DNA of 64,000 nt from Macrostomum lignano (lineage: Eukaryota), in contig NIVC01000625.1 of NCBI GenBank assembly GCA_002269645.1, positions 124,001 to 188,000 of the forward strand. The letters are read 5' to 3'. The position numbers were made by a program, and so were the translations under genes. Position 1 is the first letter of the stretch; each line of letters begins with the position of its first letter. Positions 2,027 through 54,002 of the stretch are shown piece by piece. The notes beneath the pieces were generated by a model. That model searched no databases, was not told the origin of the DNA, and was given only the letters and a program-made list of their open reading frames with translations.

Positions 2027-4328
2027 ATGCACCTGTGCAGTGCTGGGCCCAGTGCTTTGCGCCAGTTGTTGCTGTTAGCACTGCTTTCTATAGCGGTTTC
2101 TGCTGCACCTGACAAATGCAGCGTCTGCAACCGCCTGACAGAGGCTTTTGAGCAAGGCCTGCAGCGCACCGCCAAGGACAACTTTGGCGGGGGCAACACG
2201 CACTGGGAGGAGAGCCGCCTTGGCAGCTGGGCCAGCAGCGAAACTCGCCTTGTGGACATACAGGTAAAGCATTTGCATCCCAATTGCAGTTTTAATCCTC
2301 TACAAATAAATCTAATTGTTGTTTCACCAGCTCATCCAAATCCAGACACCCGAATCTCGAATTTGAGTATCCCGAATTCCAGAGTTCTGAATCCCAGAAT
2401 CCAAGAATCCCGAATCCCAATAACCTAGAATCCTGAATCCGAGAATCCCAAATCCCAGAATCTCGAATACTGAATCCGAGAATCCCAAATCCCAGAATCT
2501 CAAATCCTGAATCCGAGAATCCCGAATCCCAGAATCCCGAATCCCAGAATCCCGAATCCCAGAATCCCGAATCCCGAATCCCCGAATCCCGAATCCCAGA
2601 ATCTCGAATCCTGAATCCCAAAATCCAGAATCCCATCCCAGAATCTCGAATCCCATAATCCCAGAATCCCGGATCCCAGAATCTCGAATCCCCGAATCCC
2701 GAATCCCAGAATCCCGAATCCCACCATCTCGAATCCCGAATCTCGAATCCCAGAATCCCGGATCCCAAAATTCCGGATCCCAGAATCCTGGATCCCAAAA
2801 TTCCGGATCCCAGAATCCTGGATCCCAGAATCTCGAATCCCAGAATCCCCAATCCCGAATCCCAGAATCCGCGAATCCCAGAATCCCAAATCCCGAATCT
2901 ACGAATCCCAGTTTCGGACGCCCCATCAGGCAGCAACTGAGATGGCCATATAAAACCCTCCGCTGCCTGGCAGGAGCGCCTGTGCTCAGACGAAGGCAAG
3001 GAGGAGGCGGTGGCCTGTCACGCCCTGCTCGAGCAGTTCGAGGAGCCTCTCGAAGGCTGGTGGTTTGGCGACTTCCGCCGAGATCCGGGCAAATCCGCCG
3101 CCAAGGCTGCCGCCGCCCTGCGCGAACTGCTGTGCGTGCGGACCGGCGGCCTCTGCTGCCAGCACGGCGCCTTCGGGCCACAGTGCGCCGCCTGCCCCGT
3201 CTGCGGCCTGCGCGGCCACTGCGACGGCAATGGGACCCGCGCAGGCAGCGGCCGCTGCACCTGCGACTCCGGCTACCGGGGTGAGCTGTGCGACCAATGC
3301 GAGACCGGCCGCTACCTGGCCACCGCCGAGCCGCTCCTCTGTCTCGCCTGCCACCCCGCCTGCGGCTCCGCCGGCTGCGTTGACGGCCCCAGCGAGTCCA
3401 ACTGTCGCGACTGCGCCACCGGCTACCAGCCGGCCGAGGCCTCCGGCGCTGCCGACGGCAGAGTCTCCTGCATCGACGTGGACGAGTGCGCGGCCACGCC
3501 CGGGCCCTGCGCCGGGCCGAACGAAACCTGCGTGAACTCGCCCGGCAGCTTCGCCTGCGACTGTCTGCCCGGCTTCCAGAGACCCGCGGCTGGCGGCGAC
3601 TGCCAGCCCGCGGAGACCGCGGCTGGAACTGACGGCGATTCCGCGGAAACTGGTGGCGATTCCGCGGAAACTGGTGACGATTCCGCGGAAAGTAGCGGAG
3701 AATCCGCGGAAACTGGCGGAGAATCCGCGGAAACTGGCGGAGAATCCGCGGAAACTGGCGGAGAATCCGCGGAAACTGCTACTCCAGCTATGGATAAGGG
3801 TACGTTAGTGTTAGTTGTTACTGCATTCTTATATAACTGCAGCTAGTTACCACCGCTGCCCCCCTTCAACTCTCGCTGCCTCGTTACCACCGCTGCCCCC
3901 TCCTCAGTCCCTCAGTGAGCCACCGCTGCCCCCCTCAGTCCCTCAGTGAGCCACCGCTGCCCCCCCCCTCAGTCCCTCAGTGAGCCACCGCTGCCCCCCT
4001 CAGTCCCTCAGTGAGCCACCACTGCCTCACCCCCAGTCCCTCAGTGTGAGCCACCGCTGCCCCCCCCTCAGTCCCTCAGTGAGCCACCGCTGCCCCCCTC
4101 AGTCCCTCAGTGAGCCACCGCTGCCCCCCTCAGTCCCTCAGTGAGCCACCGCTGCCCCCCTCAGTCCCTCAGTGAGCCACCGCTGCCCCCCTCAGTCCCT
4201 CAGTGAGCCACCGCTGCCCCCCCAGTCCCTCAGTGAGCCACCGCTGCCCCTTCCCCCAGTCTCTGAGTGTGGACCGCAGCCTCTGAGACACCCAGCCGTC
4301 CTTCATCAATATTTCAGAGGAGCTGTGA
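2027..4328 (+). CDS. CRELD2: CRELD2-like protein (cysteine-rich with EGF-like domains), soluble ER form, 3 exons, 357 aa
   Basis: Exons 2027-2263, 2974-3799 and 4318-4328 join in phase (0, then 1) at GT-AG sites. Signal peptide, CSVC (CxxC), the CRELD WE-domain motif NFGGGNTHWEESRLGSWASSETRL, EGF/furin-like repeats, a Ca-binding EGF (CIDVDECAA...CVNSPGSFACDC) and C-terminal KEEL ER-retention signal. Confidence 0.9.
2349..2910. repeat. Degenerate 7-9-mer array (GAATCCC/CCCAGAATC) in CRELD intron 1
   Basis: Visible periodicity; explains the low-complexity ORFs at 2292-3181. Confidence 0.9.
3631..3777 (+). repeat. Coding 21-bp minisatellite, 7 units, encoding (G/D)G(D/E)SAET in CRELD exon 2
   Basis: Unit GGCGGAGAATCCGCGGAAACT, in frame. 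Confidence 0.9.
3850..4260. repeat. About 30-33-bp minisatellite (CTCAGTCCCTCAGTGAGCCACCGCTGCCCCCC) in CRELD intron 2
   Basis: About 12 units with a variable C-run. Confidence 0.9.
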
Positions 4329-6139: not shown

Positions 6140-7320
6140 GCATCTCAACTACCTGTCTGCCTACCACTGCACCTCAGCTACCTGTCTGCCCATCACTGCA
6201 CCTCTGCTACCTGTCTGTGTTCATCACCGCACCTCAGCCACCTGTCTGTGTTCATCACCGCACATCAGCCACCTGTCTGTGTTCATCACCGCACCTCAGC
6301 CACCTGTCTGTGTTCATCACCGCACATCAGCCACCTGTCTGTGTTCATCACCGCACATCAGCCACCTGTCTGTGTTCATCACCGCACATCAGCCACCTGT
6401 CTGTGTTCATCACCGCACATCAGCCACCTGTCTGCCCACCACCGCACCTCTGCCACCTGTCTGTGTTCATCACCGCACATCAGCCACCTGTCTGCCCATC
6501 ACTGCACCTCTGCTACCTGTCTGTGTTCATCACCGCACCTCAGCCACCTGTCTGTGTTCATCACCGCACATCAGCCACCTGTCTGCCCACCACCGCACCT
6601 CTGCCACCTGTCTGTGTTCATCACCGCACATCAGCCACCTGTCTGCCCACCACCGCACCTCTGCCACCTGTCTGTGTTCATCACCGCACATCAGCCACCT
6701 GTCTGCCCACCACCGCACCTCTGCCACCTGTCTGTGTTCATCACCGCACATCAGCCACCTGTCTGTGTTCATCACCGCACATCAGCCACCTGTCTGTGTT
6801 CATCACCGCACATCAGCCACCTGTCTGCCCACCACCGCACCTCTGCCACCTGTCTGTGTTCATCACCGCACATCAGCCACCTGTCTGTGTTCATCACCGC
6901 ACATCAGCCACCTGTCTGTGTTCATCACCGCACATCAGCCACCTGTCTGTGTTCATCACCGCACATCAGCCACCTGTCTGTGTTCATCACCGCACATCAG
7001 CCACCTGTCTGTGTTCATCACCGCACATCAGCCACCTGTCTGTGTTCATCACCGCACATCAGCCACCTGTCTGTGTTCATCACCGCACATCAGCCACCTG
7101 TCTGTGTTCATCACCGCACATCAGCTACCTGTCTGTGTTCATCACTGCACATCAGCCACCTGTCTGTGTTCATCACCGCACATCAGCCACCTGTCTGTGT
7201 TCATCACCGCACATCAGCCACCTGTCTGTGTTCATCACCGCACATCAGCCACCTGTCTGTGTTCATCACCGCACATCAGCTACCTGTCTGCCCATCACTG
7301 CACGTCTGCTACCTGTCTGC
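6140..7320. repeat. 31-bp minisatellite (CACATCAGCCACCTGTCTGTGTTCATCACCG) with shorter variants
   Basis: About 38 units; source of the three overlapping 350-412 aa ORFs. Confidence 0.95.
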
Positions 7321-7451: not shown

Positions 7452-8903
7452 TTACAGCAGTTGCTCAGCCTGGATGCTCCGCAGCGCCCGCTGAATGAGC
7501 TGCCTGAAGCCGCGTTCGTGCGCCAGGCTCATCATGAGCGACTCCATCGGCTTCTCAGACATCTTGGCGAGCATCACCGCGGTGCCGTGTTCGCCCGAGA
7601 ATGCGTTGAGGAACGCGGTCTCCTTGCCGGTGTCGGCGAGGCCGCTAAGCAGGCGGTGCAGCTCAGCGTCGGAGAGGCCGAGAGGCTGCTGCGAATCCGC
7701 GGCCTCCGGCAAAGACGAGGCAGCCGGGGCGGCGGCGGCCGACGGCACCGTCGTCTGGCGCTGCAGGTCGCCCGCCGGCGCGGTGCACATGCCGCTGTCT
7801 ATGGTGCCCACCGCGCTGCCAGCCGACTTCAGCCAAGTCTCTTCCGCTGCTGCCGCCTCATTTCCGCCTGCGGCCTCCGAGATGCCCGGCTGCAGCTGCT
7901 GCTCGAACAGCTCCTTGAGCTCCGGTCGGTCGGCGGCGAGCTCCTCGGCCGTGACGCCGTCGCTGTCCTCCTCCAGCGGGTCGGCGCCGCTGTCCAGCAG
8001 GAACCTGACCGCCCGAGCGGCCCCGGCACTCACAGCTGACATCAGCGGTGTCCACCGCTTGCCGCGGTGCTGCCTCTCGTCCAGGTTTACGCTGATGCCG
8101 GCATCTCTGGCGAACTGCAGCAGCGGGCTCAGCATGTCCTCCCTGTCCCGAGCTGCCATCATGTGAAGCACCGTGTCACCCGCCCGGTCATTCATGTGGA
8201 TGGCGGCAGACACCTGTCCCGCTGCGAGCCGGCCCTCCTCGATCAGCCTCTTTGTAACCCGCAGACCGGAGACGAGCACCTCCGTGGACTCCTCCAGCGC
8301 GCAGTGGTGCAGGAAGTTCCTACCGTCGTTGTCGTACAGTCGGTGAAGCTGGGTCGGCTCCCGGATCAGCAGGCGCTCCATCAGGCTGTCGGCTGAGCTG
8401 CCGCTCTGCGTGCTGAGCATGAGCAGACTTTCTCGATGGCGAGTCCGATCGTCAAGGGCGTCGGGGTTTCGCTTGACCGCAATGTCCACCAGCTTCTCGG
8501 CCCGCTCGCCCTGCTGCCTCGCCAGCGCGGACGCCATCGGGTTGTCGCCATCGCTGTTGTGGACTCTCAGCATCTCGGAGCTGTCCTCGAACGCCTTCAG
8601 GAGGATGTCCTCACAGTTGTCGCCCTCGCTGTACTGGTGCATCGCTGTAGCCAGGATTCTGGGGTACTCGAGCAGCAGGCGGCGCTGCATGTCCTGCGGC
8701 AGGGAGCGAAACCTCAGCGATTCCGGAGTCTCAGGAGCTGGGCCATCAGCTCCCAGACTTAACTGCTGCATTTGGTCTTCCACACTGATGTCGCTGGCTC
8801 TTGCAGGTTTTTTGCTTTTCTCTTCTAATTTTTTATCCATGAGCAAGTCTGCTTTTTTATTGGCTAGGTCTATTCTGCAATGCAAAACATCATTTTCATA
8901 CAT
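7452..8903 (-). CDS. Ankyrin-repeat protein with DSGxxT motif and C-terminal death-fold-like domain, paralog A (5' end uncertain)
   Basis: 483-aa ORF. Ankyrin motifs GRNFLHHCA, AGDTVLHMMAA, WTPLMSAVSAG...FLLDSGADP, DGVTAEELA; DSGMCT at 7782-7799; helical tail. A possible splice acceptor (ttgcag|) at 8875-8877 means the true start may be spliced or the internal MDKKL. Confidence 0.8.
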   Translation of the reverse strand: MYENDVLHCRIDLANKKADLLMDKKLEEKSKKPARASDISVEDQMQQLSLGADGPAPETPESLRFRSLPQDMQRRLLLEYPRILATAMHQYSEGDNCEDILLKAFEDSSEMLRVHNSDGDNPMASALARQQGERAEKLVDIAVKRNPDALDDRTRHRESLLMLSTQSGSSADSLMERLLIREPTQLHRLYDNDGRNFLHHCALEESTEVLVSGLRVTKRLIEEGRLAAGQVSAAIHMNDRAGDTVLHMMAARDREDMLSPLLQFARDAGISVNLDERQHRGKRWTPLMSAVSAGAARAVRFLLDSGADPLEEDSDGVTAEELAADRPELKELFEQQLQPGISEAAGGNEAAAAEETWLKSAGSAVGTIDSGMCTAPAGDLQRQTTVPSAAAAPAASSLPEAADSQQPLGLSDAELHRLLSGLADTGKETAFLNAFSGEHGTAVMLAKMSEKPMESLMMSLAHERGFRQLIQRALRSIQAEQLL

Positions 8904-10573
8904 TTTACATACATTTCTTTTAATTTTAACAGTCTATACCATATGCACTGATACTATACAAAGTATAGATATAAAAGTTTATGATAAGGAACTACAATTT
9001 TAGTTTATTAGATATTTTTTAAACAAAAAATTGTATGAATTAGACATAAACAGATATTTTTTTACTTATTTTTTGCTTTAACTAAATAATGGATTATTAT
9101 AAACTATTCAATTGTGATACAAAATATTTTGAATAACAAACAAGGTATTCATCACAGGTATGGATCCAGAAAATTTTAAATGGGAGGATGCAGATTACTA
9201 AGGTATATGTAATATACACTCAGCAACATCAAAAAGTCGCCATCACAGAAGATTCCTTTTTGAGAGGGCAGCAGGTAAAGTCTCTCAATCTTTGCGAGTG
9301 ACGCAACTTAGCTACACCGTGGCAGACTTGAGTTGAGGAACAAAGTGGGGGGAGTGGTGTGCAAGGGTTGGATGGATCATAGCTACCCCAATCAGTTTTC
9401 TTGTATATTTTATTTCAGAATAGTCCAAGAGAAATTGCTCACTGGCGCATAGAGTGGCAACTTTTCAACATTGCTGAGTATATATATATATATCATATAT
9501 ATGCATATCATATTACATATATGAGACAGGCATTAATAATAGCTCTAATACTTTTAAATTTTATTTGTTTTATGTTTGCCTTTCTTAGAAAAACCTTTAT
9601 TCAAATCTGCGCAAAATATTTGTTTGAATGTTGTGGTTTGCAAAAATATTTCTGCAATTATTATTTTGTTTAAACTATAATGCATTGTGGGTATAAATAG
9701 ACATGCTGAGCAGACTTGAGGAAGCAACCATTTGCTGCCTCTTGGTTTTTCGATAAGCAAATTTAGTTTGTTCTAAATATTGAAATCGCTTAAAGACTTA
9801 ATCATTTCTTAGAGTATAAGAGCCCCAATTGGGAGTATCAGAAACCGCTACAAGCGAGAAACCGCCTCAGGGCAGTAATAGTAAATTCGCCTCAGGGCAG
9901 GAGAACCGCCTCAGAGCGAGGGAAAGATCGCCTCAGGGCAGAGAAGGAGCACAAGCTGTGACCCTCTGATCCAGGGAACGCCCAGGACTGAGAGAATAAT
10001 ATTAGAGAAAGTATAGGAATAGAATAGACAGTGCTATTAGACCGCTTAGGCCAGAAAAGTACGATAGAAGTACATATGCTACCAATAGAAAGACAATTAA
10101 TAACCAGTAGAATTATTAAGGAGAAATAGCTTTATTACAACTTTGGGTGGCAGTTAGGATTCTCAGTGTACAGGGAAAAGCACTGTGACAACTTGGTAAC
10201 AGCAGAGGGATTTTGTATCGTACAGAAGAAACCCCTAGTACAACTTGGTGGCATAACAGTGGAATTCTCATAGAGAGCCAAAAGGCCTAGTAAAGCTAGC
10301 AAAAGAATAATTAAGAGCCCTGTAACATATATATATGTACACAATAATGTGTATTTTCCATATAAGAAATAAAAAAAAATCTAACTCAATGAAGGATGGC
10401 CTGTGTACCTCCCCCAAAGTCTGCCACTGATTCAATATTATTTATATAGTTTTAAAATATGATTAGGCCTAAAGTCTTTGCAAATATATTTTAACTAGGC
10501 CTAAGCCCTAAGGCTATAGCTTCATTAAACTCGTTGTATAGGCCTAGACATTATGTTATATGAATGGTGAAAG

Positions 10574-11479
10574 ACCTGTATAACTTTCGCCGACACATTT
10601 TCAGACAGATCTTCCGACACATTTTACGACACTTAAAATGTCGCAAAGTGTCAGAAAAAGTGTTGGAAAAGTTGACATTCGCCGACACATATTTTCCGAC
10701 ACCTAAAGTAATGCTGCAGTGTCTGATGCTTTACTTCTGCCAACACATCTTCCGACACTTAAAATGTCACTTCTTAGAGCGAGGTCATATACATGTAGCT
10801 CGTACTATTCATGTTAGCTTCATGTATGTTTGTTAAGGTACTGCAGCAGACTGCAGTGTTGCGCATCATTTAGTTGCATCAATTGATATACACACGTATA
10901 TGTACATGTAATAGTTGGCATTTTCTGATTACAAACAGTACGAGCGTATGTATTGTAAATGAGGGCATGATATTTTCAGTGTCAAATGTATTCGCAGTCA
11001 AATTAATACAAAAAAATGCTAGCTATAATTACTAAGTAAATACATAATACTAAATCCCAGTGAAGTCAGAATATCAGATAATCGTAGTATGGCACTCCAA
11101 AGTAATACGAATCGAAAGCTCGATCTAATTAATGTCCAAATTTTTGAACATTACGGATACTAACTTTTTCGAAATACTTTGTGCATACATGTAGCTACAT
11201 TTACATGACCTCGCTCTAAGAAGTGACATTTTAAGTGTTGGAAGATGTGTTGGCAGAAGTAAAGCATCAGACACTGCAGCATTACTTTAGGTGTCGGAAA
11301 ATATGTGTCTGCAAATGTTAACTTTTACGACACTTAAAATGTCGCAAAAAGTGTCGGAAGATCTGTCTGAAAATGTGTCGGCAAAAGTTAACCGTTGCGA
11401 CACTTTTTGCGACATTTTAAGTGTCGTAAAATGTGTCGGAAGATCTGTCTGAAAATGTGTCGGCAAAAGTTATACAGGT
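10574..11479. mobile_element. Foldback/MITE-like element with long internally repetitive inverted arms
   Basis: Left arm 10574 to about 10800 (ACCTGTATAACTTT...GAGCGAGGTCAT) is the reverse complement of the right arm about 11200-11479. The arms are built from CGACAC/GTGTCG sub-repeats. No clear TSD. Confidence 0.75.
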
Positions 11480-13154: not shown

Positions 13155-14498
13155 TCAACCTTCTTTAACTTCTTTGAAGGCTTGAAGCAGAGTTTCCCTG
13201 CTCACGTGATGGCCATGGGCTCCCCAGATGCTCAGGGCGGCTCTGAGGGGCCGCTCAGAAAGGGTTGCTAATCCAGTGTGATCTGGCAGACGATCATCAA
13301 GAATGCGGAAGAGTGCGCTGAAGAATGCCGAAGTCTTGCCAGTGCTCAACAGTTGGTCCTCCAGACTCGCTAAGTCCATCTCAGAGAGCTCACTGCCCCG
13401 TTGAGGTTCAGCCGAGGCGACACTCGGCGCACTGAGAGACGACACACCGCTGTCAATGGAGCGCACCTGCCCCAACCCGCAATTTGTCAGCCACGATTCG
13501 GCTTTGACCATCGGCGGGACGGCATCGCAACTCGAGTCCGGGTTGTCTTCCTCAGCCTCAGCGATCTCCATGTCTTCTGAGTGCTCGGACTGAAGCAGCT
13601 CCTTGAGCTCCGGTCGGTCGGCGGCGAGCTCCTCGGCCGTGACGCCGTCGCTGTCCTCCTCCAGCGGGTCGGCACCGCTGTCCAGCAGGAACCTGACCGC
13701 CCGAGCGGCCCCGGCACTCACAGCTGACATCAGCGGTGTCCACCGCTTGCCGCGGTGCTGCCTCTCGTCCAGGTTTACGCTGATGCCGGCATCTCTGGCG
13801 AACTGCAGCAGCGGGCTCAGCATGTCCTCCCTGTCCCGAGCTGCCATCATGTGAAGCACCGTGTCACCCGCCCGGTCATTCATGTGGATGGCGGCAGACA
13901 CCTGTCCCGCTGCGAGCCGGCCCTCCTCGATCAGCCTCTTTGTAACCCGCAGACCGGAGACGAGCACCTCCGTGGACTCCTCCAGCGCGCAGTGGTGCAG
14001 GAAGTTCCTACCGTCGTTGTCGTACAGTCGGTGAAGCTGGGTCGGCTCCCGGATCAGCAGGCGCTCCATCAGGCTGTCGGCTGAGCTGCCGCTCTGCGTG
14101 CTGAGCATGAGCAGACTTTCTCGATGGCGAGTCCGATCGTCAAGGGCGTCGGGGTTTCGCTTGACCGCAATGTCCACCAGCTTCTCGGCCCGCTCGCCCT
14201 GCTGCCTCGCCAGCGCGGACGCCATCGGGTTGTCGCCATCGCTGTTGTGGACTCTCAGCATCTCGGAGCTGTCCTCGAACGCCTTCAGGAGGATGTCCTC
14301 ACAGTTGTCGCCCTCGCTGTACTGGTGCATCGCTGTAGCCAGGATTCTGGGGTACTCGAGCAGCAGGCGGCGCTGCATGTCCTGCGGCAGGGAGCGAAAC
14401 CTCAGCGATTCCGGAGTCTCAGGAGCTGGACCATCAGCTCCCAGACTTAACTGCTGCATTTGTTCGTCAACTGGTTCCACGTGAGGCATGCTGCGCAT
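13155..14498 (-). CDS. Ankyrin-repeat protein with DSGxxS motif and C-terminal death-fold-like domain, paralog B
   Basis: 447-aa ORF. 289 codons give the same protein as paralog A. DSGVSS at 13437-13454. Tail contains P-x-x-A-L-x-x-W...vs.e.LlqAf.ev, resembling death-domain helices 4-5. A TAG acceptor at 14508-14510 lies just upstream of the ATG. Confidence 0.8.
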   Translation of the reverse strand: MRSMPHVEPVDEQMQQLSLGADGPAPETPESLRFRSLPQDMQRRLLLEYPRILATAMHQYSEGDNCEDILLKAFEDSSEMLRVHNSDGDNPMASALARQQGERAEKLVDIAVKRNPDALDDRTRHRESLLMLSTQSGSSADSLMERLLIREPTQLHRLYDNDGRNFLHHCALEESTEVLVSGLRVTKRLIEEGRLAAGQVSAAIHMNDRAGDTVLHMMAARDREDMLSPLLQFARDAGISVNLDERQHRGKRWTPLMSAVSAGAARAVRFLLDSGADPLEEDSDGVTAEELAADRPELKELLQSEHSEDMEIAEAEEDNPDSSCDAVPPMVKAESWLTNCGLGQVRSIDSGVSSLSAPSVASAEPQRGSELSEMDLASLEDQLLSTGKTSAFFSALFRILDDRLPDHTGLATLSERPLRAALSIWGAHGHHVSRETLLQAFKEVKEG

Positions 14499-14859
14499 TG
14501 CTTGGGCCTAACGCTTTGCTTGTTGTAGATATATGAGCAGATTATAATTTAGTTCCAGGTTCAAAGCCTGCAAGCGTATTATAAATATACCCAGGTTAGA
14601 ATTCTTGCCCGCGGCCGTTCTTTTGGTAACCCGCGAGCAATCCACGGATTCGTCTGAACGATGCTATTTTTAGCACTGGCATAATATGGAACCGCGTAAA
14701 GCGAACGTACTTTGACAGGCACACAATGTGGACCAGAATTTGCTATGCTTTTACTTTAAATTCACTGTCTAAGCTCTAAGCTATTTAATAATTGCTTCTT
14801 CAAGACTATAACCACTGCTAATGCTCAATGTCCAAAAACTGTTTTCTTTAGACCAATTC

Positions 14860-16700
14860 ACTGCTTCCCTCAGTCCAGCCCGCTGTTCCCCCAGTCCAAC
14901 CCGCTGTTCCCTCAGTCAAACCCACTGTTCCCTCAGTCCAGCCCGCTGTTCCCTCAGTCCAGCCCGCTGTTCCCTCAGTCCAACCCACTGTTCCCTCAGT
15001 CCAGCCCGCTGTTCCCTCCGTCCAACCCACAGTTCTCTCAGTCCAGCCCGCTGTTCCCTCAGTCCAACCCGTTGTTCCCTCAGTCCAACCCACAGTTCCC
15101 TCAGTCCAGCCCGCTGTTCCCTCAGTCCAACCCGTTGTTCCCTTAGTCCAACCCACTGTTCCCTCAATCCAGCCCGCTGTTCCCTCAGTCCAACCCGTTG
15201 TTCCCTCAGTCCAACCCACAGTTCCCTCAGTCCAACCCACTGTTCCCTCAGTCCAGCCCGCTGTTCCCTCAGTCCAGCCCGCTGTTCCCTCAGTCCAACC
15301 CACTGTTCCCTCAGTCCAGCCCGCTGTTCCCTCAGTCCAACCCACAGTTCTCTCAGTCCAGCCCGCTGTTCCCTCAGTCCAACCCGTTGTTCCCTCAGTC
15401 CAACCCACAGTTCCCTCAGTCCAGCCCGCTGTTCCCTCAGTCCAACCCGTTGTTCCCTTAGTCCAACCCACTGTTCCCTCAATCCAGCCCGCTGTTCCCT
15501 CAGTCCAACCCGTTGTTCCCTCAGTCCAACCCACAGTTCCCTCAGTCCAACCCACTGTTCCCTCAGTCCAGCCCGTTGTTTCCTCAGTCCAACCCACTGT
15601 TCCCTCAATCCAGCCCGCTGTTCCCTCAGTCCAACCCACTGTTCCCTCAGTCCAGCCCGCTGTTCCCTCAGTCCAACCCACTGTTCCCTCAGTCCAGCCC
15701 GCTGTTCCCTCAGTCCAGCCCGCTGTTCCCTCAGTCCAACCCACAGTTCTCTCAGTCCAGCCCGCTGTTCCCTCAGTCCAACCCGTTGTTCCCTCAGTCC
15801 AACCCACAGTTCCCTCAGTCCAGCCCGCTGTTCCCTCAGTCCAACCCACAGTTCTCTCAGTCCAGCCCGCTGTTCCCTCAGTCCAACCCGTTGTTCCCTT
15901 AGTCCAACCCACTGTTCCCTCAATCCAGCCCGCTGTTCCCTCAGTCCAACCCGTTGTTCCCTCAGTCCAACCCACAGTTCCCTCAGTCCAACCCACTGTT
16001 CCCTCAGTCCAGCCCGTTGTTTCCTCAGTCCAACCCACTGTTCCCTCAATCCAGCCCGCTGTTCCCTCAGTCCAACCCACTGTTCCCTCAGTCCAGCCCG
16101 CTGTTCCCTCAGTCCAACCCACTGTTCCCTCAGTCCAGCCCGCTGTTCCCTCAGTCCAGCCCGCTGTTCCCTCAGTCCAACCCACAGTTCTCTCAGTCCA
16201 GCCCGCTGTTCCCTCAGTCCAACCCGTTGTTCCCTCAGTCCAACCCACAGTTCCCTCAGTCCAGCCCGCTGTTCCCTCAGTCCAACCCACAGTTCCCTCA
16301 GTCCAGCCCGCTGTTCCCTCAGTCCAGCCCGCTGTTCCCTCAGTCCAGCCCGCTGTTCCCTCAGTCCAACCCGCTGTCCCAGTCCCACCTGCTGTCTTCA
16401 CAAGGTCAACCCACTGTTTCTCCAAGGTCAACCCACTGTTTCCACAAGGCCAATCGACTGTTTCCCCAAGGCCAACCCACTAGTCTAACCCACTGTTTTC
16501 CCAAGGTCGATCCACTGTTTCACCAAGGCTAACCCACTTTCCGCAAGACCAACTCAAAAGCCAACCCACTGTTTACCCAAGGCCAACCCACTGTTTCCCC
16601 AAGACCAACTCAAAAGCCAACCCACTGTTTACCCAAGGCCAACCCACTGTTTTCCCAAGGCCGACATACTGTGTTATCAAGACCAACCCTCGTTTCTCAG
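14860..16700. repeat. 21-bp minisatellite (CTGTTCCCTCAGTCCA(G/A)CCC(G/A)) with a degenerate CCAAGGCCAACCCACTGTTT tail
   Basis: About 72 units to about 16390, then a decayed related array; source of ORFs at 14821-16532. Confidence 0.95.
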
Positions 16701-17222
16701 TGTCCAACCCACTTTTTTCCTGAGGCCAAACATGGGGTCATTGCCAACGGCCACAAACTGCTGCTTGCAGGTTTTTTATAAACTCTTGTTTCTTCTAGCA
16801 AGGACAGTGCTTAAAAGGCCCGAGGCTGTATTGTTAACAAAGCACTGATGTCGCAACTAAACGAGCCCTACTGATTCTACTGCTAGCAATTTCAATTTCC
16901 TTCTCCAACAGCTCCAAGGCAGCCAATGAGTGGCAGCTGGAGAAAGCAGGCCGCACTCTCACCTGCCCCAGCTCTCCACCTTTCTATCCCTTGCATTGGC
17001 GAGTGTACGGCAGATCCAGCTATTACTTGGCCTCACCCTCAACTCTCTGAAGCTTAAAGCTTGGGTGGAAGCTACGGCCGCGTACGCTCATCAGGCCAAG
17101 TGTACAGCCGTAGCTGAAGCCGTACCAGCTCACTTTCCCGGGCAGAGACGGCCAGAGTTGGGCGCGAGCTACCAGCCTAGCGCACTGTCAGTCAGCCGGG
17201 CGCAATCCATGCCATCCCGGAC

Positions 17223-20123
<2,901 letters not shown>

Positions 20124-24035: not shown

Positions 24036-25433
24036 ATGGCGCTGCTCCCAGACCTCCGCTCCGGCCCGCTGCTGGACGTCGAGGAATTTCAAATTGACAG
24101 CGACAGCGAGAACGGCGACGCCGACGTCCCGACGCCCTGCGCGACGCCCACCGGGGAGGAGGGCGAGGCGGCAGCTGAGCCTCGCCGAGGCCTCCTGGGC
24201 CGCATCGCCTTCCTGGAGGCGGAGGCCGAGAAGCTCATTGAGCACAGCCGCGGCTGCCGCGGCCACGCTGATGAGATGCAGTCCCTGCTGGCCCGGCTGC
24301 ACGACCAGAAGGCCGCCCTGCAGCGCCTGCTGGGAGCCGGCGACGCTGGTCCCGAGCTCGATTCCTGGGAGGAACCCTGCGACCTGACCGAGCACACGGC
24401 TCGGGCCTACCTGCAGTGGCTGCGCCGCCTGCTGCACGACCTGTCGCAGGCGGTGGACCAGGCGGCCAGCGGGGCCGTCCTCGCCTCCGCCAGTGCCGCA
24501 GGCGCCACCGCGCCCCGCCTGAGCGGCCGGCGTCGGCGAGACGCGCCCAGCCGGATCTTCCCGAACCTCGAGGCGCTGGACATCGCCGCTGTTGACAATG
24601 GATCCGGCGACGTCTTTCATCAGCCTGGCGAGGCCGGCGACTTGCGTGACTCGCCGGGCGAGGGCGGCACCGGCTGGGAGCCGCTGCCCCGCCAGGCGCT
24701 CTACTGTGTGGTTGGCGACGCCCGCCGCGTCACCGTCGTGGGCCTCGGTGGGCAGCTGCTAGCGCGGACGCGGCTGCGCGGCGGCGGCTGCGACGAGCAG
24801 GAGGCGGAGGCGGGCAGCAACCTGGAGCGGATCAACTATCTGCGCTGCTCCGGCCGGCTGCTCCTGTCGGACAACCAGAGCCTGTACATCTGCGACCGCT
24901 GCTGCCGCGTGCTCCGCTGCCTGCACGGCTTCAGCTGGGTTGTTGGGCACTGCGTTGACGAGCCGGCCGACCGGCTGTACATCGTGGACCGCGTCAACGA
25001 GTTCTTGTCCGTGTACGGCCTGGCCAGACTTGGGGAGCTCGACCGCCTCGCTCACCGCGACTTCACCGACGGCATCAGCTCGGTGACGGCCCTGGCCCGC
25101 ACTCTGTTCGTTGCCGATCGCGGCGCCAACGCCATCTTCGCCTTCGAGACCGAGTCGCTGCAGCTGGCCTTCCGGGTGCCGCTGCGAAGCCCGCTGTTCA
25201 TCACTTCAGACTGGCGCGGCGGCTGCCTCTACGTCACCGTGGGCGGCCGGGACAACACCGTGCGGATGCTGGACGGCCAGGGCCAGCTGCGCCGCTCCCT
25301 GTCCGGCGGCCGCGGCTCGCAGCCCGGACAGTTCGGCTCGCCTGGTGGCCTCACCGTCTCTCTGGACGGCACGGAGCTGTTCGTGTGCGACCTGGACAAC
25401 CGGAGGGTGCAGGTGTTCGGGCTGGGGGGCTGA
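24036..25433 (+). CDS. Coiled-coil + NHL-repeat beta-propeller protein, single exon, 465 aa
   Basis: GC-rich ORF with accATGG start. C-terminal NHL repeat GRGSQPGQFGSPGGLTVSLDGTELFVCDLDNRRVQVF and preceding blades (LYIVDRVN, LFVADRGANAIF, LYVTVGG); N-terminal heptad region RIAFLEAEAEKL...LARLHDQKAALQRLL. Confidence 0.85.
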   Translation: MALLPDLRSGPLLDVEEFQIDSDSENGDADVPTPCATPTGEEGEAAAEPRRGLLGRIAFLEAEAEKLIEHSRGCRGHADEMQSLLARLHDQKAALQRLLGAGDAGPELDSWEEPCDLTEHTARAYLQWLRRLLHDLSQAVDQAASGAVLASASAAGATAPRLSGRRRRDAPSRIFPNLEALDIAAVDNGSGDVFHQPGEAGDLRDSPGEGGTGWEPLPRQALYCVVGDARRVTVVGLGGQLLARTRLRGGGCDEQEAEAGSNLERINYLRCSGRLLLSDNQSLYICDRCCRVLRCLHGFSWVVGHCVDEPADRLYIVDRVNEFLSVYGLARLGELDRLAHRDFTDGISSVTALARTLFVADRGANAIFAFETESLQLAFRVPLRSPLFITSDWRGGCLYVTVGGRDNTVRMLDGQGQLRRSLSGGRGSQPGQFGSPGGLTVSLDGTELFVCDLDNRRVQVFGLGG

Positions 25434-26541: not shown

Positions 26542-28166
26542 TTTAGGGTCATTGAGATTGGTTCTGTCAGATTTAGGGTCATTGGCATTGATTCTGTCAG
26601 CTTTAGGGTCATTGGCATTGATTCTGTCAGATTTAGGGTCATTGACATTGGTTCTGTCAGATTTAGGGTCATTGACATTGGTTCTGTCAGATTTAGGGTC
26701 ATTGGCATTGATTCTGTCAGCTTTAGGGTCATTGACATTGATTCTGTCAGCTTTAAGGTCATTGACATTGATTCTGTCAGCTTTAGGGTCATTGACATTG
26801 GTTCTGTCAGATTTAGGGTCATTGGCATTGATTCTGTCAGCTTTAAGGTCATTGACATTGACTCTGTCAGCTTTAGGGTCATTGACATTGATTCTGTCAG
26901 CTTTAGGGTCATTGACATTGATTCTGTCAGCTTTAGGGTCATTGACATTGACTCTGTCAGATTTAGGGTCATTGACATTGGTTCTGTCAGATTTAGGGTC
27001 ATTGACATTGGTTCTGTCAGATTTAAGGTCATTGACATTGGTTCTGTCAGCTTTAGGGTCATTGGCATTGATTCTGTCAGCTTTAGGGTCATTGGCATTG
27101 ATTCTGTCAGATTTAGGGTCATTGACATTGGTTCTGTCAGATTTAGGGTCATTGACATTGGTTCTGTCAGATTTAAGGTCATTAACATTGGTTCTGTCAG
27201 CTTTAGGGTCATTGGCATTGATTCTGTCAGCTTTAGGGTCATTGGCATTGATTCTGTCAGCTTTAGGGTCATTGACATTGACTCTGTCAGCTTTAGGGTC
27301 ATTGACATTGATTCTGTCAGCTTTAGGGTCATTGACATTGACTCTGTCAGCTTTAGGGTCATTGGCATTGATTCTGTCAGATTTAGGGTCATTGACATTG
27401 GTTCTGTCAGATTTAGGGTCATTGACATTGGTTCTGTCAGATTTAAGGTCATTGACATTGGTTCTGTCAGCTTTAGGGTCATTGACATTGATTCTGTCAG
27501 ATTTAAGGTCATTGACATTGATTCTGTCAGATTTAGGGTCATTGGCATTGATTCTGTCAGATTTAAGGTCATTGACATTGATTCTGTCAGATTTAGGGTC
27601 ATTGGCATTGATTCTGTCAGCTTTAGGGTCATTGGCATTGATTCTGTCAGCTTTAGGGTCATTGACATTGATTCTGTCAGCTTTAGGGTCATTGACATTG
27701 ACTCTGTCAGCTTTAGGGTCATTGACATTGATTCTGTCAGCTTTAGGGTCATTGACATTGACTCTGTCAGCTTTAGGGTCATTGACATTGGTTCTGTCAG
27801 ATTTAGGGTCATTGACATTGGTTCTGTCAGATTTAGGGTCATTGACATTGGTTCTGTCAGATTTAAGGTCATTGACATTGGTTCTGTCAGCTTTAGGGTC
27901 ATTGACATTGATTCTGTCAGATTTAAGGTCATTGACATTGATTCTGTCAGCTTTAGGGTCATTGACATTGGTTCTGTCAGATTTAAGGTCATTGACATTG
28001 GTTCTGTCAGCTTTAGGGTCATTGACATTGATTCTGTCAGATTTAAGGTCATTGACATTGATTCTGTCAGCTTTAGGGTCATTGACATTGATTCTGTCAG
28101 ATTTAAGGTCATTGACATTGACACTGGCTCTGTCAGATTTAAGGTCATTGACATTGGTTCTGTCAG
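26542..28166. repeat. 30-bp minisatellite (TTTAGGGTCATTGACATTG(A/G)TTCTGTCAG(C/A))
   Basis: About 54 units; source of the 550-570 aa ORFs. Confidence 0.95.
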
Positions 28167-28497
28167 AATTAGTTTCTTTGACACTGGATTAAGGCGTTAG
28201 TGTACTTTTTCATCTTTGCTATCGATTTAGTCAGATTTTGATTGCACTCATTTGCTTCTGTAGTTGAATATCTGTAGTATTAAATTGCTGTAATTACTTT
28301 TCCTGTCTGTGCTTTACTAATAACTATGCTAGAAGATCATTATGTACAGTTAATGCACCGCTGTCAGTTGGTCAGCTCTGCAAGCTACTGCTGCTAGTTA
28401 GCTAATGCCTGGCTGATTTCACTCAAGCCTGGAACTGGAAGGCTGGCAAAATGTTTATTGTTTTCCTATTTTCCAACCTCTGATCTTTTGGTCATAC

Positions 28498-30529: not shown

Positions 30530-47035
<16,506 letters not shown>

Positions 47036-49390: not shown

Positions 49391-49693
49391 TGACCCCCAA
49401 GTCAGCAGCTCCGGTCAGGCCCTGACCCCCAAGTCAGCAGCTCCGGTCAGGCCCTGACCCCCAAGTCAGCAGCTCCGGTCAGGCCCTGACCCCCAAGTCA
49501 GCAGCTCCGGTCAGGCCCTGACCCCCAAGTCAGCAGCTCCGGTCAGGCCCTGACCCCCAAGTCAGCAGCTCCGGTCAGGCCCTGACCCCCAAGTCAGCAG
49601 CTCCGGTCAGGCCCTGACCCCCAAGTCAGCAGCTCCGGTCAGGCCCTGACCCCCAAGTCAGCAGCTCCGGTCAGGCCCTGACCCCCAAGTCAG
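49391..49693. repeat. 32-bp minisatellite (CTGACCCCCAAGTCAGCAGCTCCGGTCAGGCC) overlapping the TRP stop codon
   Basis: About 9.5 nearly perfect units. Confidence 0.95.
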
Positions 49694-52600
49694 CGGCGGC
49701 AGGCCGGACATCCCCAGCCAGAAGACGCATCCGCAGCCGCTGCCTGGCGGTGCTGAGCACGGCTCCGTACTCCAGCTGGGTTCGCCGCCGCAGGTAGCTG
49801 ACGGGGACTTCGGCCGGGCCGTCCCGCATAGCGCGGCTGATTGCGTCCCACAGCAGCAGGGTCAGCAGGTGCAGCGGCCACAGCAGGTTGAATGGCACCG
49901 GCAGGTCCGGCCCGACCTGCAGGTACTTGATCTTCGTCAGCGATGCCCGGTACAGCCAGTCGGACTCGCGCACCGCGGACAGCTGGGCGAAGGTCTCGGA
50001 CATCATGGCCACCAGCAGGTTGATCAGCACAACTGCGCCGACTATCACGAAGGAGATGTGCGCCAGGAAGCCCAGCAGCTCCAGGGTCTTCAGGCTGACG
50101 TGGCCGGAGGCGCCAGACTGCAGCAGGTGGTCTTCCCGGGCCGACATTGTCAGCAGCGACCAGAACAGCGTCTGGAACACCGTCCCGTCAGACTGGAAGT
50201 AGGCGCTGGCGCAGGACACCACGCGGTACAGGGTGATCAGCAGGCAGGTCCAGGCGCTCAGCACCACCAGGAGGATCGCGGCAAAGTTCAGCACGTCCTT
50301 CAGCACCCGGCTCAGCGAGACCACCAGGGTGCCCACGTGCCTGCGATGGGGAATCAGTCAGGTGGGGAATCAGTCAGGTGGGGAATCAGTCAGGTAGGGA
50401 ATCAGTCAGGTGGGGAATCAGTCAGGTGGGGAACCAGTCACGTAGGGAATCAGTCAGGTGGGGAATCAGTCAGGTGGGGAATCAGTCAGGTGGGGAATCA
50501 GTCAGGTGGGGAATCAGTCAGGTGGGGAATCAGTCAGGTGGGGAATCAGTCAGGTGGGGAATCAGTCAGGTGGGGAATCAGTCAGGTGGGGAATCAGTCA
50601 GGTGGGGAATCAGTCAGGTGGGGAATCAGTCAGGTGGGGAATCAGTCAGGTAGGGAATCAGTCAGGTGGGGAATCAGTCAGGTAGGGAATCAGTCAGGTG
50701 GGGAATCAGTCAGGTGGGGAATCAGTCAGGTGGGGAATCAGTCAGGTGGGGAATCAGTCAGGTGGGGAATCAGTCAGGTGGGGAATCAGTCAGGTGGGGA
50801 ATCAGTCAGGTGGGGAATCAGTCAGGTAGGGAATCAGTCAGGTGGGGAATCAGTCAGGTAGGGAATCAGTCAGGTGGGGAATCAGTCAGGTGGGGAATCA
50901 GTCAGGTAGGGAATCAGTCAGGTGGGGAATCAGTCAGGTGGGGAATCAGTCAGGTGGGGAATCAGTCAGGTGGGGAATCAGTCAGGTGGGGAATCAGTCA
51001 GGTGGGGAATCAGTCAGGTGGGGAATCAGTCAGGTGGGGAATCAGTCAGGTGGGGAATCAGTCAGGTGAATATCAGTCAGGGTGCTACCTCTGCAGCGCA
51101 GCCATGGAGAAGATGCTCAGCAGGGTGAAGGCGTGCCCGAAGCCCATGGCAACGCTGCCGGCCAGGTGAGGCTCCAGGCCATCCAGCAGGAGGGCGGAGA
51201 AGGCAGCGGTGAAGTTGCCGAGGCCGGGGCAGGCGAGGCTGGCGGGCTGCGAGCAGACCAGAGCGGACACGTTGAGGCCGGCGGCGCACACGCAGGCGCG
51301 GATGTCGGTGCCGTTCGGCAGGCCGGCCAGCAGCCGCTCACTGGAGGCGCGGAGGCGGGAGGCCCAGATGAAGGTCAGCGGCAGGCCGGCCAGATAGCAG
51401 GCAACGGCAAGGTGGTGCAGCAGCCCGAAGAAGCCGGTGACCAGGGCCAATCGGCGAGGCCCCAGCAGGCACAGGTGGTGCACATTCTTCACCAGGTAGG
51501 CGAACATGAAGATGAGGAACAGAGCCTGCAGCGCCAGCTGGCCTCCGCCAATCCAGGCGGTGCCGGACGCGCCGCAGACGGCCGACTTGGCGACGCTGTC
51601 GCCGAGGTCGCGGGCAGAGGAGACCCAGGAGGCCAGCAGGGCGAGGCTGACGGCGAAGGCGACGGTGTCGAGGGCGTGGCAGAAGCGGGCGCTCTGGCAC
51701 AGCGGGCGGAGGCGCGGGTGCGGGAACAGCAGGTAGACGGGAGACAGGGCGTAGCCAGCGGTAGCGGCGAGTGCCAGGCCCGAGCTCGAGCTGCCTGCGG
51801 GGTCGGCGGGGCCAAGGATCCGGATTCAAATCCCTTTTGAACCTCACAAAACTACAACCGAACGCTAAATCCCAAGTCCCAATCCCAAGTCCCAAGTCCC
51901 AACCCCAGATCCAAAGTCCCAGTCCCAAATCCCAAGTCCCAATCCCAAATCCCATGTCCCAACCCCAACTCCCAAGTCCCAATCCCAAATCCCATGTCCC
52001 AACCCCAACTCCCAAGTCCCAATCCCAACTCCCAAGTCCCAATCCCAACTCCCAAGTCCCAATCCCAACTCCCATGTCCCAACCCCAACTCCCAAGTCCC
52101 AATCCCAACTCCCATGTCCCAATCCCAAATCCCAAGTCTCGACCCCAACTCCCAAGTCCCAACCCCAAATCCCAACCCGAATCGCCGCCAGCTCTCACCC
52201 GGCAGACCCTGCGGCAGCCGCTCCTCAGGCCAGCGGCAGCCGTGCTCCCAGGCCCTGTCCAGCACGAGCTGAGCGGCCTGGTGCGCCAGCGGCTCCCGCA
52301 GTTCCAGGTCGGCGAAGTGCTTCAGCCGGCCCAGCCGATCCTCTGGCGCGAAGGCGTCCAGCAGCAGCGCGAAGGCCTCCTCGCTAGTCCAGCAGCCGTC
52401 CAGCAGCAGCACCAGCGAGCGGCAGCCCCCGAGGCGGACCGGCAGCAGGAGCTCCCGCGGCAGCAGCGGCTCCAGGTGGCCCAGCCGGCGCATCAGGTTG
52501 AGGCCCTGCTGAAGGACGTCCTCGCCGGACGCCCTGAATGCCTGGTAGAGCGGCGAGACCAGCGCCGGCAGGAGGCGCTCGGCGTACAGCCGGCGCAGGC

Positions 52601-52910
52601 GCGGGTCCTGGCGCAGCGCTCGGCACAGCGAGCAGCCGCAGGCGGCCAGGCGGTGCGGGAACGGCAGCCGCTCGCTTCGCTCCCGCACCAAGTAGCCCAC
52701 CAGCTCGGCGTGGCCGCCCAGCACCGCCCACGCCAGCGGAGACTGCACGACCAAGGCGGGCGGCAGCGACTCCACGTGCTGGGCTGCGCACCACGGCGAC
52801 TCGTAGGAGGCCTTGAGGGTGGCGAGGTCGCCACGGAGCACCGCCTCCAGCTGCTTCTCCCGCCAGCGCTCCACGGCCAGGATGGACAGGTCGATGCCTT
52901 CGCCTGACAT
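49671..52910 (-). CDS. TRPC-like (canonical/short TRP) cation channel, divergent, at least 3 exons, about 695 aa from the ATG at 52910
   Basis: Exons 52914/52910-52199, 51794-51089 and 50340-49671 join in phase (1, then 2). Ankyrin [18 protein letters not shown]; TRP_2 motif LPFPH...CGCSLC; [10 protein letters not shown]; S4-S5 linker [19 protein letters not shown]; pore FQTLFWSL; S6 [15 protein letters not shown]; TRP domain SDWLYRA...[10 protein letters not shown]. An upstream exon 53930-53786 would join in phase but is unconfirmed. Confidence 0.85.
50347..51067. repeat. 16-bp minisatellite (GGGGAATCAGTCAGGT) filling the last TRP intron
   Basis: About 45 units. Confidence 0.95.
51866..52177. 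repeat. Degenerate 6-7-mer array (CCCAAGT/CCCAAAT/CCCAACT) in a TRP intron
   Basis: Directly visible. Confidence 0.9.
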
Positions 52911-52914
52911 TGGC

Positions 52915-53606
<692 letters not shown>

Positions 53607-54002
53607 TAGTAAAACAGGCTCACTTGAGTGTCCAAAACAAAAGTTCGCACAAGCAGTTTGAGTCTCTGTTCTCCTGTTATGTTTCAAACCCGGCAGCTTG
53701 GCTTTGAATTTTAACTTCCCAAGCCCTCATTGCAATTCCAATATCTGCATATGTCTCACACCCCCTCTGCCCATGTCCCGCTCACGAGGATCCCAGCCCC
53801 GAGTTCGGCCCTCGCCTGTTGGGTGTCGATCGATACGGGAAGCCCGACACCCTCGCCACCGACTCTGGGGCGAGTCCGTGACTCAGCGAGTGAGCAGTGG
53901 GGCGCAACTGTCCGTGGGCGGCTCCTTGAACTGAGTGGTTTGTGCGGAGAATTTGATAATTGCCACACTTTGTATGCAGCATTTGCAGCAAGCAGTTTCT
54001 GT

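Follow-up and report, generated by a model that had tools for sequence, protein, structure and literature searches.

The window analysed here, a stretch of 64,000 nucleotides from Macrostomum lignano (contig NIVC01000625.1, positions 124,001 to 188,000 of the forward strand), holds two tandem genes, A and B, which together with an unlinked third paralog, C, encode proteins of a single plan: ankyrin (ANK) repeats, a disordered hinge carrying a short D-S-G motif, and a helical C-terminal tail whose modelled shape resembles that of a death domain. We tentatively regard the three as lineage-restricted adaptors in which the hinge motif is degron-like and the tail death-fold-like, and which may be turned over by the logic of a phosphodegron. 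The plan recalls IkB proteins and the C-terminal half of NF-kB p105/p100, with which A and B were first compared. They may work like these proteins, but our analysis does not support their membership of the family.

Two tandem genes and an unlinked paralog

The two genes in the window lie on the same strand and have the same architecture.

13155..14498, reverse strand: gene B, single-exon coding sequence of 447 amino acids (aa) plus stop, with ankyrin block, hinge and death-fold-like tail (from the listing of open reading frames)
7452..8903, reverse strand: gene A, tandem paralog of B, single-exon coding sequence of 483 aa plus stop, architecture as in B (from the listing of open reading frames, BLASTP against B, Pfam ankyrin matches and the match to the database protein P0002)

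The interval 13155-14498 on the reverse strand contains exactly one open reading frame (ORF), uninterrupted, which is B, and A follows 4.3 kb downstream. B is 98% identical to the NCBI entry 'hypothetical protein BOX15_Mlig014147g1' of Macrostomum lignano (P0001 below); the start methionine of P0001 is that of ORF B, and its end, KEVKEGR, lies one residue beyond the KEVKEG that closes B. A is matched by P0002. The tandem pair is also found on the published contig NIVC01001583.1 (L001), at 10001-11353 and 15613-17063, and two assemblies or haplotypes carry intact ORFs. A and B are genes already annotated but uncharacterised, and searching the published literature by their identifiers gave no match. 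The preliminary description, made from the letters of the window, had considered that the host might be a flatworm, which the matching proteins and contig of Macrostomum lignano bear out; the three-part architecture that it saw, ankyrins followed by a DSG motif and a helical tail, is real in both A and B.

In the copy of A on NIVC01001583.1, a one-base gap relative to the window at about L001 16332 splits the ORF, and only 236 aa are annotated there; this points to an indel of the assembly or else to a disabled allele. In the window, a minisatellite array (14859-16395) starts about 360 bp upstream of gene B.

The third paralog, C (P0004, Mlig006948, 412 aa, 44% identical), is encoded on a contig other than that of A and B (L002 10001-11722), where its gene spans 1,722 bp with 1,239 bp coding. 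A single canonical GT-AG intron, about 480 bp long, follows codon 76 of C, a point at which A and B are continuous. The absence of the intron from A and B would reflect either intron loss or a retrocopy origin of the tandem pair. The UniProt models P0007-P0009 disagree at the junction of this intron.

The family appears, so far, to be restricted to M. lignano. With a profile built from the tails of A and B, an exhaustive HMMER scan covering 1.84 billion representative proteins returned only P0001 and C (P0004), and no relative outside M. lignano. Similarly, a search with the family profile found, beyond the M. lignano members, only generic fungal and metagenomic ankyrin proteins. A word-indexed protein search missed C despite the many 5-mers that C has in common with the query, and its negatives are weak here; when given the N-terminal region it returned zero matches, missing even the proteins of M. 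lignano itself, which makes the result uninformative rather than evidence of absence.

A constrained motif in the hinge

Between the ankyrin block and the tail of B lies a segment that is disordered by prediction, with a predicted local distance difference test (pLDDT) score of 24-37 in the full-length AlphaFold2 model.

13389..13595, reverse strand: disordered Ser/Glu/Ala-rich hinge, residues 302-370 of B (pLDDT 24-37 and composition)
13437..13454, reverse strand: DSGVSS, residues 349-354 of B, a beta-TrCP-type phosphodegron-like motif (translation check, regular expression and shuffling)
7782..7799, reverse strand: DSGMCT, residues 369-374 of A, the counterpart of the motif in A (translation check and regular expression)

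Both motifs had been read correctly in the preliminary description, DSGVSS in B and DSGMCT in A, and C carries DSGVQS at residue 316 in the context VDSGVQS. The regular expression D-S-G-x(2,3)-[ST] (ELM DEG_SCF_TRCP1_1) matches exactly once in each of A, B and C, at homologous positions of the hinge. Across A, B, P0001 and C, no triplet of the linker other than DSG is invariant, and the wider form common to the paralogs is [IV]DSG[VM]x[ST](x0-2)AP[SA]. Because A and B are only about 30% identical after residue 301, with no DNA similarity detected by blastn, the DSG motif has been kept within a diverged linker. The same had been claimed before C was known, and the claim extends to all three paralogs, in which the rest of the linker cannot be aligned.

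When each linker was shuffled with its composition preserved, DSG.{2,3}[ST] matched in only 1-2% of trials. Variation between copies of B is also informative. The hinge of B in the window differs from that of the copy on NIVC01001583.1 by 5 nonsynonymous and 0 synonymous changes, and from that of P0001 by five replacements and one indel, several of these lying no more than a dozen residues away, and IDSGVSSL is untouched. These comparisons of sequence are good evidence that the hinge motif is a constrained short linear motif. That beta-TrCP is its reader is inferred from the pattern, and is plausible in view of the beta-catenins of planarians, which retain the corresponding GSK3 phosphorylation sites and bind beta-TrCP, an indication that the degron system is used in the phylum (PMC5643146).

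A tail with a death-domain-like shape

The hinge leads into a compact domain that ends the protein.

13158..13388, reverse strand: five-helix death-fold-like domain of 77 aa, residues 371-447 of B (AlphaFold2, Foldseek and profiles)
7455..7676, reverse strand: homologous helical tail, residues 410-483 of A (alignments; about 28% identity to the tail of B)

AlphaFold2, run on residues 366-447 of B alone with an alignment of the tails of A, P0001 and C, gave a model of five helices with a pLDDT of 84.1 and a predicted template modelling score (pTM) of 0.75, the chain stopping after the fifth helix. The helical tail domain, earlier put at roughly 75 aa, is thus modelled confidently, at 77 aa. When the model was compared with the PDB by Foldseek, about 10 of the 15 top matches were death-fold domains, with template modelling (TM) scores of 0.5-0.6 and root-mean-square deviations of 3.3-4.2 A. 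They include p75NTR (TM 0.52, 27% identity over 75 columns), UNC5H2 (0.55), Pelle/Tube (0.60), NF-kB p105 (2dbf, TM 0.50), THOC1/p84, TRADD and the CARDs of RIG-I. A library of viral structures, serving as a crude background, gave TM scores mostly of 0.2-0.35, with one exception of 0.59 at rank 34.

Profile methods point in the same direction. A hidden Markov model (HMM) of the tail, searched against the PDB, had the p75NTR death domain among its best matches (E=0.5, over helices 4-5). Comparison of the tails by hhalign with eight death domains placed helices 4-5 in register over 28 columns (P=0.0023, probability 12.7%). The conserved tail pattern P-x-R/x-A-x-L-S-x-W ... L-L-x-A-x-K/R-E-V falls at the position of the death-domain helix 4-5 signature. 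Judged from the model and these matches, the tail is probably a diverged, truncated death-fold module.

Several other candidates for the tail were set aside. The Pfam matches of the isolated tails to LETM1_RBD (E=0.085) and DUF1890 (E=0.23) were dismissed as noise, as were PsaG and nitric oxide dioxygenase (E about 1), found by phmmer against the PDB. PF24410 (wHTH-Hsp90_Na-associated) was taken as a chance match: it reached 17.7 bits against a cut-off of 23 bits, over 27 residues, in C only and partly within the private C-terminal extension of C. A viral polymerase cofactor, matched by the tail profile in the PDB over 39 residues with a K-x-x-A-F-L-x-A string (E about 0.45), found no structural support.

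The ankyrin block and its conversion in B

The hinge is preceded by a block of ankyrin repeats and a less regular N-terminal region.

14019..14417, reverse strand: conserved N-terminal helical region, residues 28-160 of B (52% identity to C; hhalign to ankyrin not significant)
13596..14018, reverse strand: recognisable ankyrin repeats, 3-4 in number with a long insertion in the first, residues 161-301 of B (Pfam and consensus-repeat scan)
13596..14462, reverse strand: gene-conversion tract in B, residues 13-301, near-identical to 7908-8774 of A

Over residues 147-291 of B, Pfam finds ankyrin families only (Ank_2 at 3e-14, Ank, Ank_3, Ank_4 and Ank_5), and a scan for the consensus repeat finds 3 repeats, at 161-179, 208-236 and 254-277. 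Two or three more repeats are plausible N-terminal to these from the spacing of the GDxP and SLLMLS elements. Residues 28-160 form helix pairs in the low-confidence full-length model and were not significant as ankyrin in a profile-profile comparison (hhalign, P=0.12); they are probably 2-3 degenerate ankyrin-like repeats and a cap. The full-length AlphaFold2 model, with a pLDDT of 44.7, is too poor for judging the ankyrin block or for a fold search. The figure of about 5-6 repeats given in the preliminary description is therefore a reasonable reading of the spacing, of which only 3-4 repeats are demonstrable by Pfam and the consensus scan. Between B in the window and its copy on NIVC01001583.1, the ratio of nonsynonymous to synonymous substitution rates (dN/dS) over residues 1-301, comprising the N-terminal region and the ankyrin block, is about 0.09, and this value between alleles or homeologs of B points to purifying selection on that part of the protein.

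Upstream of the ankyrins, the leucine-rich QMQQLSL is present at residues 13-19 of B as described. Its reading as a nuclear export signal was rejected, for no more than three of its positions are hydrophobic and C has DRLPEIS at the corresponding place.

Residues 13-301 of B are completely identical to residues 44-332 of A. At the DNA level, blastn aligns 884 bp of the two genes at 99.2% identity with sharp edges, and in the window the 867 coding bases of the tract show 2 differences, both synonymous. By blastn, no DNA similarity is seen in the flanks or in the 3' third of either gene; the C-terminal parts of the proteins are about 30% identical, and their synonymous sites are saturated. On NIVC01001583.1, the copy of B differs from A at 9-10 positions of the core, versus 2 in the window. 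Because the near-identical core sits between diverged C-termini and flanks, and because more differences are retained on NIVC01001583.1, the paralogs themselves are old and the ankyrin core of B has lately been overwritten. These comparisons indicate that the core of B is the product of a recent gene conversion, with A as the donor.

A possible mechanism and competing explanations

Under the reading that we tentatively prefer, A, B and C would probably be cytoplasmic adaptor or scaffold proteins in which the ankyrin platform binds a partner and the C-terminal five-helix module probably serves homotypic assembly. A signal-activated kinase would phosphorylate both hydroxyl residues in the hinge motif, which would allow the SCF-beta-TrCP ubiquitin ligase to dock there. 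The protein could then be degraded on demand, or the tail severed from the ankyrin platform. The same logic operates in IkB-alpha and in the C-terminal half of NF-kB p105/p100. The gene models, the order of the domains, the disordered hinge, the kept motif and the death-domain-like form of the tail come directly from the analysis; phosphorylation, binding by beta-TrCP, regulated turnover and any tie to Rel/NF-kB are inferred.

Several observations weigh against this reading. In the hinge, the motif is one of six residues only, which another reader could use, and it is not accompanied by a conserved upstream lysine, the hinge of C having no lysine at all. Its conservation is seen within M. lignano, the family searches having given no outside orthologs. 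Divergence between A and B is no smaller in the tails (dN 0.93) than in the linkers (0.65). The model of the tail comes from a very shallow alignment, of 3 distinct sequences, and lacks the sixth helix of a death fold. No match of the tail to a death domain is significant on its own, either by Foldseek (E>=0.8, with none at E<=0.001) or by HMMER (E=0.5), and Pfam Death (PF00531) is unmatched by any of the tails even at E<=10. The preliminary description had expected AlphaFold and Foldseek to give a six-helix death fold; the best structural matches are indeed death domains, that of p105 included, but the helices are five and the Pfam family is silent.

The observations on the hinge would also suit an explanation in which A, B and C are ankyrin and death-fold-like adaptors and the motif is something other than a degron: a caspase-type site, cut after the Asp of [ST]-[IV]-D-S-G, a docking site of the kinase or 14-3-3 type, or a fold-back contact on the ankyrin groove or the tail. 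The lack of a conserved upstream lysine is in keeping with such a role, and the conservation reaches past the degron core to A-P-[SA]. Moreover, Ile or Val always comes before the Asp and the small residues Ser-Gly come after it, as at many caspase sites, and death-fold proteins often partner caspases. However, the residue at P4 is R, G or S, which matches no known caspase preference, and the three paralogs fit D-S-G-hydrophobic-x-[S/T], with a hydrophobic residue in fourth place, as beta-TrCP substrates typically have. Flatworms are also reported to lack FADD, TRADD, RIPK and caspase-10, and the reported losses extend to NIK and the TNFR1 death domain (PMC4894443). We consider a non-degron role of the motif somewhat unlikely.

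Alternatively, the tail could be a helical domain peculiar to the lineage and without kinship to the death fold, its matches reflecting the generic packing of small bundles, and the genes could be fast-evolving, species-restricted ankyrin proteins of no particular pathway. The five helices, the individually non-significant matches and the silence of Pfam Death all accord with this, as do the fast divergence of the tails and the return of M. lignano proteins only from the 1.84 billion representatives scanned. Nevertheless, structure search, HMM profile and profile-profile comparison converge independently on death domains, two of them on p75NTR; the TM scores of the control library are much lower, and the conserved pattern of the tail stands where death domains have their helix 4-5 signature. 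A private domain is for these reasons unlikely.

Comparison with IkB proteins and other known systems

The proposal from which this analysis started was that A and B are signal-degraded inhibitors or scaffolds of a Rel/NF-kB-like pathway. In its strict form they would be true members of the IkB family, stand-alone descendants of the ANK-death-domain half of a p105/Relish-type gene, each holding a Rel factor in the cytoplasm until DSGxxS phosphorylation of the IKK type triggers destruction. The modules are the same three as those of the p105/p100 C-terminus, namely ankyrin repeats, DSGxxS and a death-fold-like tail, and the p105 death domain is among the Foldseek matches. In the first word-based search, moreover, the sole match outside Macrostomum was a fish 'NF-kappa-B inhibitor cactus-like' protein (E=1.2e-4), which aligns with C over about 210 aa with the repeat register kept.

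The sequence searches, however, give no support for a grouping of the ankyrins with IkB, Bcl-3 or p105. In phmmer searches of B and C against all PDB sequences, generic ankyrin proteins rank first (ankyrin-1/2, NOMPC, tankyrase, TRPA1 and the designed consensus repeats, or DARPins), and no IkB or Bcl-3 chain is among the best 60 matches. The cactus-like match vanishes when the family profile is used, which finds fungal ankyrin proteins instead, and B aligned by BLASTP with human IkB-alpha reaches 26 bits (E=1e-3, in a single comparison). On these comparisons, IkB membership of the ankyrins of A, B and C is not supported.

The position of the motif differs as well. IkB-alpha and Cactus carry the degron ahead of the repeats, and p105/p100 carry it beyond the death domain, whereas in A, B and C the motif stands between repeats and tail; no DSGxxS motif is present at the N-terminus, where IkB-alpha, IkB-beta, IkB-epsilon and Cactus have theirs. 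A Rel homology domain (RHD) was detected neither in A, B and C, in which Pfam finds ankyrin only, nor in the further large ORFs scanned in the window, in agreement with the earlier statement on the window; no genome-wide search for Rel was made. In the literature, p50/p105 is reported absent from Platyhelminthes (PMC11432056), and the RHD genes of planarians are only very divergent ones (PMC13563047). With ankyrins that are not IkB-like, a degron in another place, no RHD in the ORFs and a tail of five helices, A, B and C do not pass as members of the IkB or p105/p100 families, and we hold true IkB membership to be improbable. A further reading is a cryptic, highly diverged pathway of the Rel/NF-kB type in this early-branching flatworm, with A, B and C as its IkB-like arm and the inhibitor having arisen by fission from a p105/Relish-type ancestor; to us it is just as doubtful.

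The likeness to known systems is one of architecture. The C-termini of p105/p100 and the Relish-type precursors have, as A and B do, an ankyrin block followed by a death or death-like domain in one polypeptide, and p105/p100 also carry a DSG-type motif in a disordered segment. Unlike A and B, they have a Rel homology domain and a glycine-rich region upstream of the ankyrins, and their degron follows the death domain, so that the order is inverted; the tail of A and B has five helices, and their ankyrin block shows no preferential sequence similarity to that of p105/p100. IkB-alpha, IkB-beta, IkB-epsilon and Cactus are likewise small stand-alone proteins with about 6 repeats, a long insertion in one repeat, and D-S-G-hydrophobic-x-S in a flexible region. 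Their degron, however, precedes the repeats and their C-terminus is a PEST region, where A and B end in a helical domain, and A and B are no more similar to them than to generic ankyrin proteins.

ANKDD1A and ANKDD1B also combine N-terminal ankyrins with a single C-terminal death domain and have no enzymatic domain. They differ in having more, and canonical, repeats and a six-helix death domain that Pfam recognises, and they are not known to have a conserved DSG hinge motif. ANKDD1 relatives were found neither in the word-based searches nor in the exhaustive search with the tail profile. The function of the ANKDD1 proteins is itself poorly understood (PMC6318269). The death domains of p75NTR, TRADD, UNC5 and Pelle-Tube, finally, are the best structural matches of the B tail and have the helix 4-5 signature in common with it, but they are of six helices and are joined to other partner domains, in receptors, kinases or adaptors, and the matches are below significance. 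The closest architectural analogues are thus the p105/p100 C-termini and the ANKDD1-type proteins, and homology to neither is detectable.

Flatworms are usually described as stripped of much of the death-domain and NF-kB toolkit (PMC4894443, PMC11432056). A conserved protein with ankyrins, a phosphodegron-like motif and a death-fold-like tail would be a candidate remnant or reinvention, in this phylum, of the signal-induced destruction of an inhibitor. Were the improbable cryptic Rel pathway real, the pathway would have been rewired and not lost in Platyhelminthes. Should the motif prove to work as a degron, the family would also be a small natural case of a degron set between a platform for binding and a module for oligomerisation; if it does not, these would simply be fast-evolving, species-restricted ankyrin proteins. 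RNA interference and transgenesis are both established in M. lignano.

Other features of the window

About two dozen long minisatellite arrays, with periods of 10-105 bp and up to 54 copies, are spread over the window, for instance at 6165-7319, 14859-16395, 26542-28183, 37885-39199, 43305-44669 and 54643-56104. Two (CTGT)n arrays of 130-170 copies lie at 19096-19622 and 52915-53607. Minisatellites and (CTGT)n arrays together make up roughly one third of the window and account for the majority of the long spurious ORFs, which occur in every frame. The other coding features are as follows.

3010-3846, forward strand: calcium-binding EGF-domain protein (EGF_CA)
18576-20123, forward strand: ankyrin-containing ORF, broken by a (CTGT)n array
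24036-25433, forward strand: NHL-repeat protein, also found beside the A/B pair on NIVC01001583.1
31892-32809 and 30530-31171, reverse strand: copine gene in two pieces (Pfam Copine, 4e-32 and 5e-10)
49671-50336, reverse strand: Ion_trans exon of a TRP-like channel (Pfam)
51852-53687, reverse strand: ORF adjoining the Ion_trans exon, its non-repetitive part ankyrin-like by eye, with no Pfam match
60587-61600 and 61900-62634, reverse strand: exons of a P-type cation ATPase (Cation_ATPase, 6e-29; Cation_ATPase_C, 4e-19)

The reading frame of the upstream copine piece stays open into a 24-bp minisatellite (31923-32483), probably part of an intron. Similarly, the ORF at 51852-53687 is fused in frame to an RQTD repeat derived from the (CTGT)n array, and together with the exon at 49671-50336 it probably belongs to one TRP-type channel gene. 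The P-type ATPase exons look, from their sequence, like those of a Na+/K+-ATPase alpha subunit.

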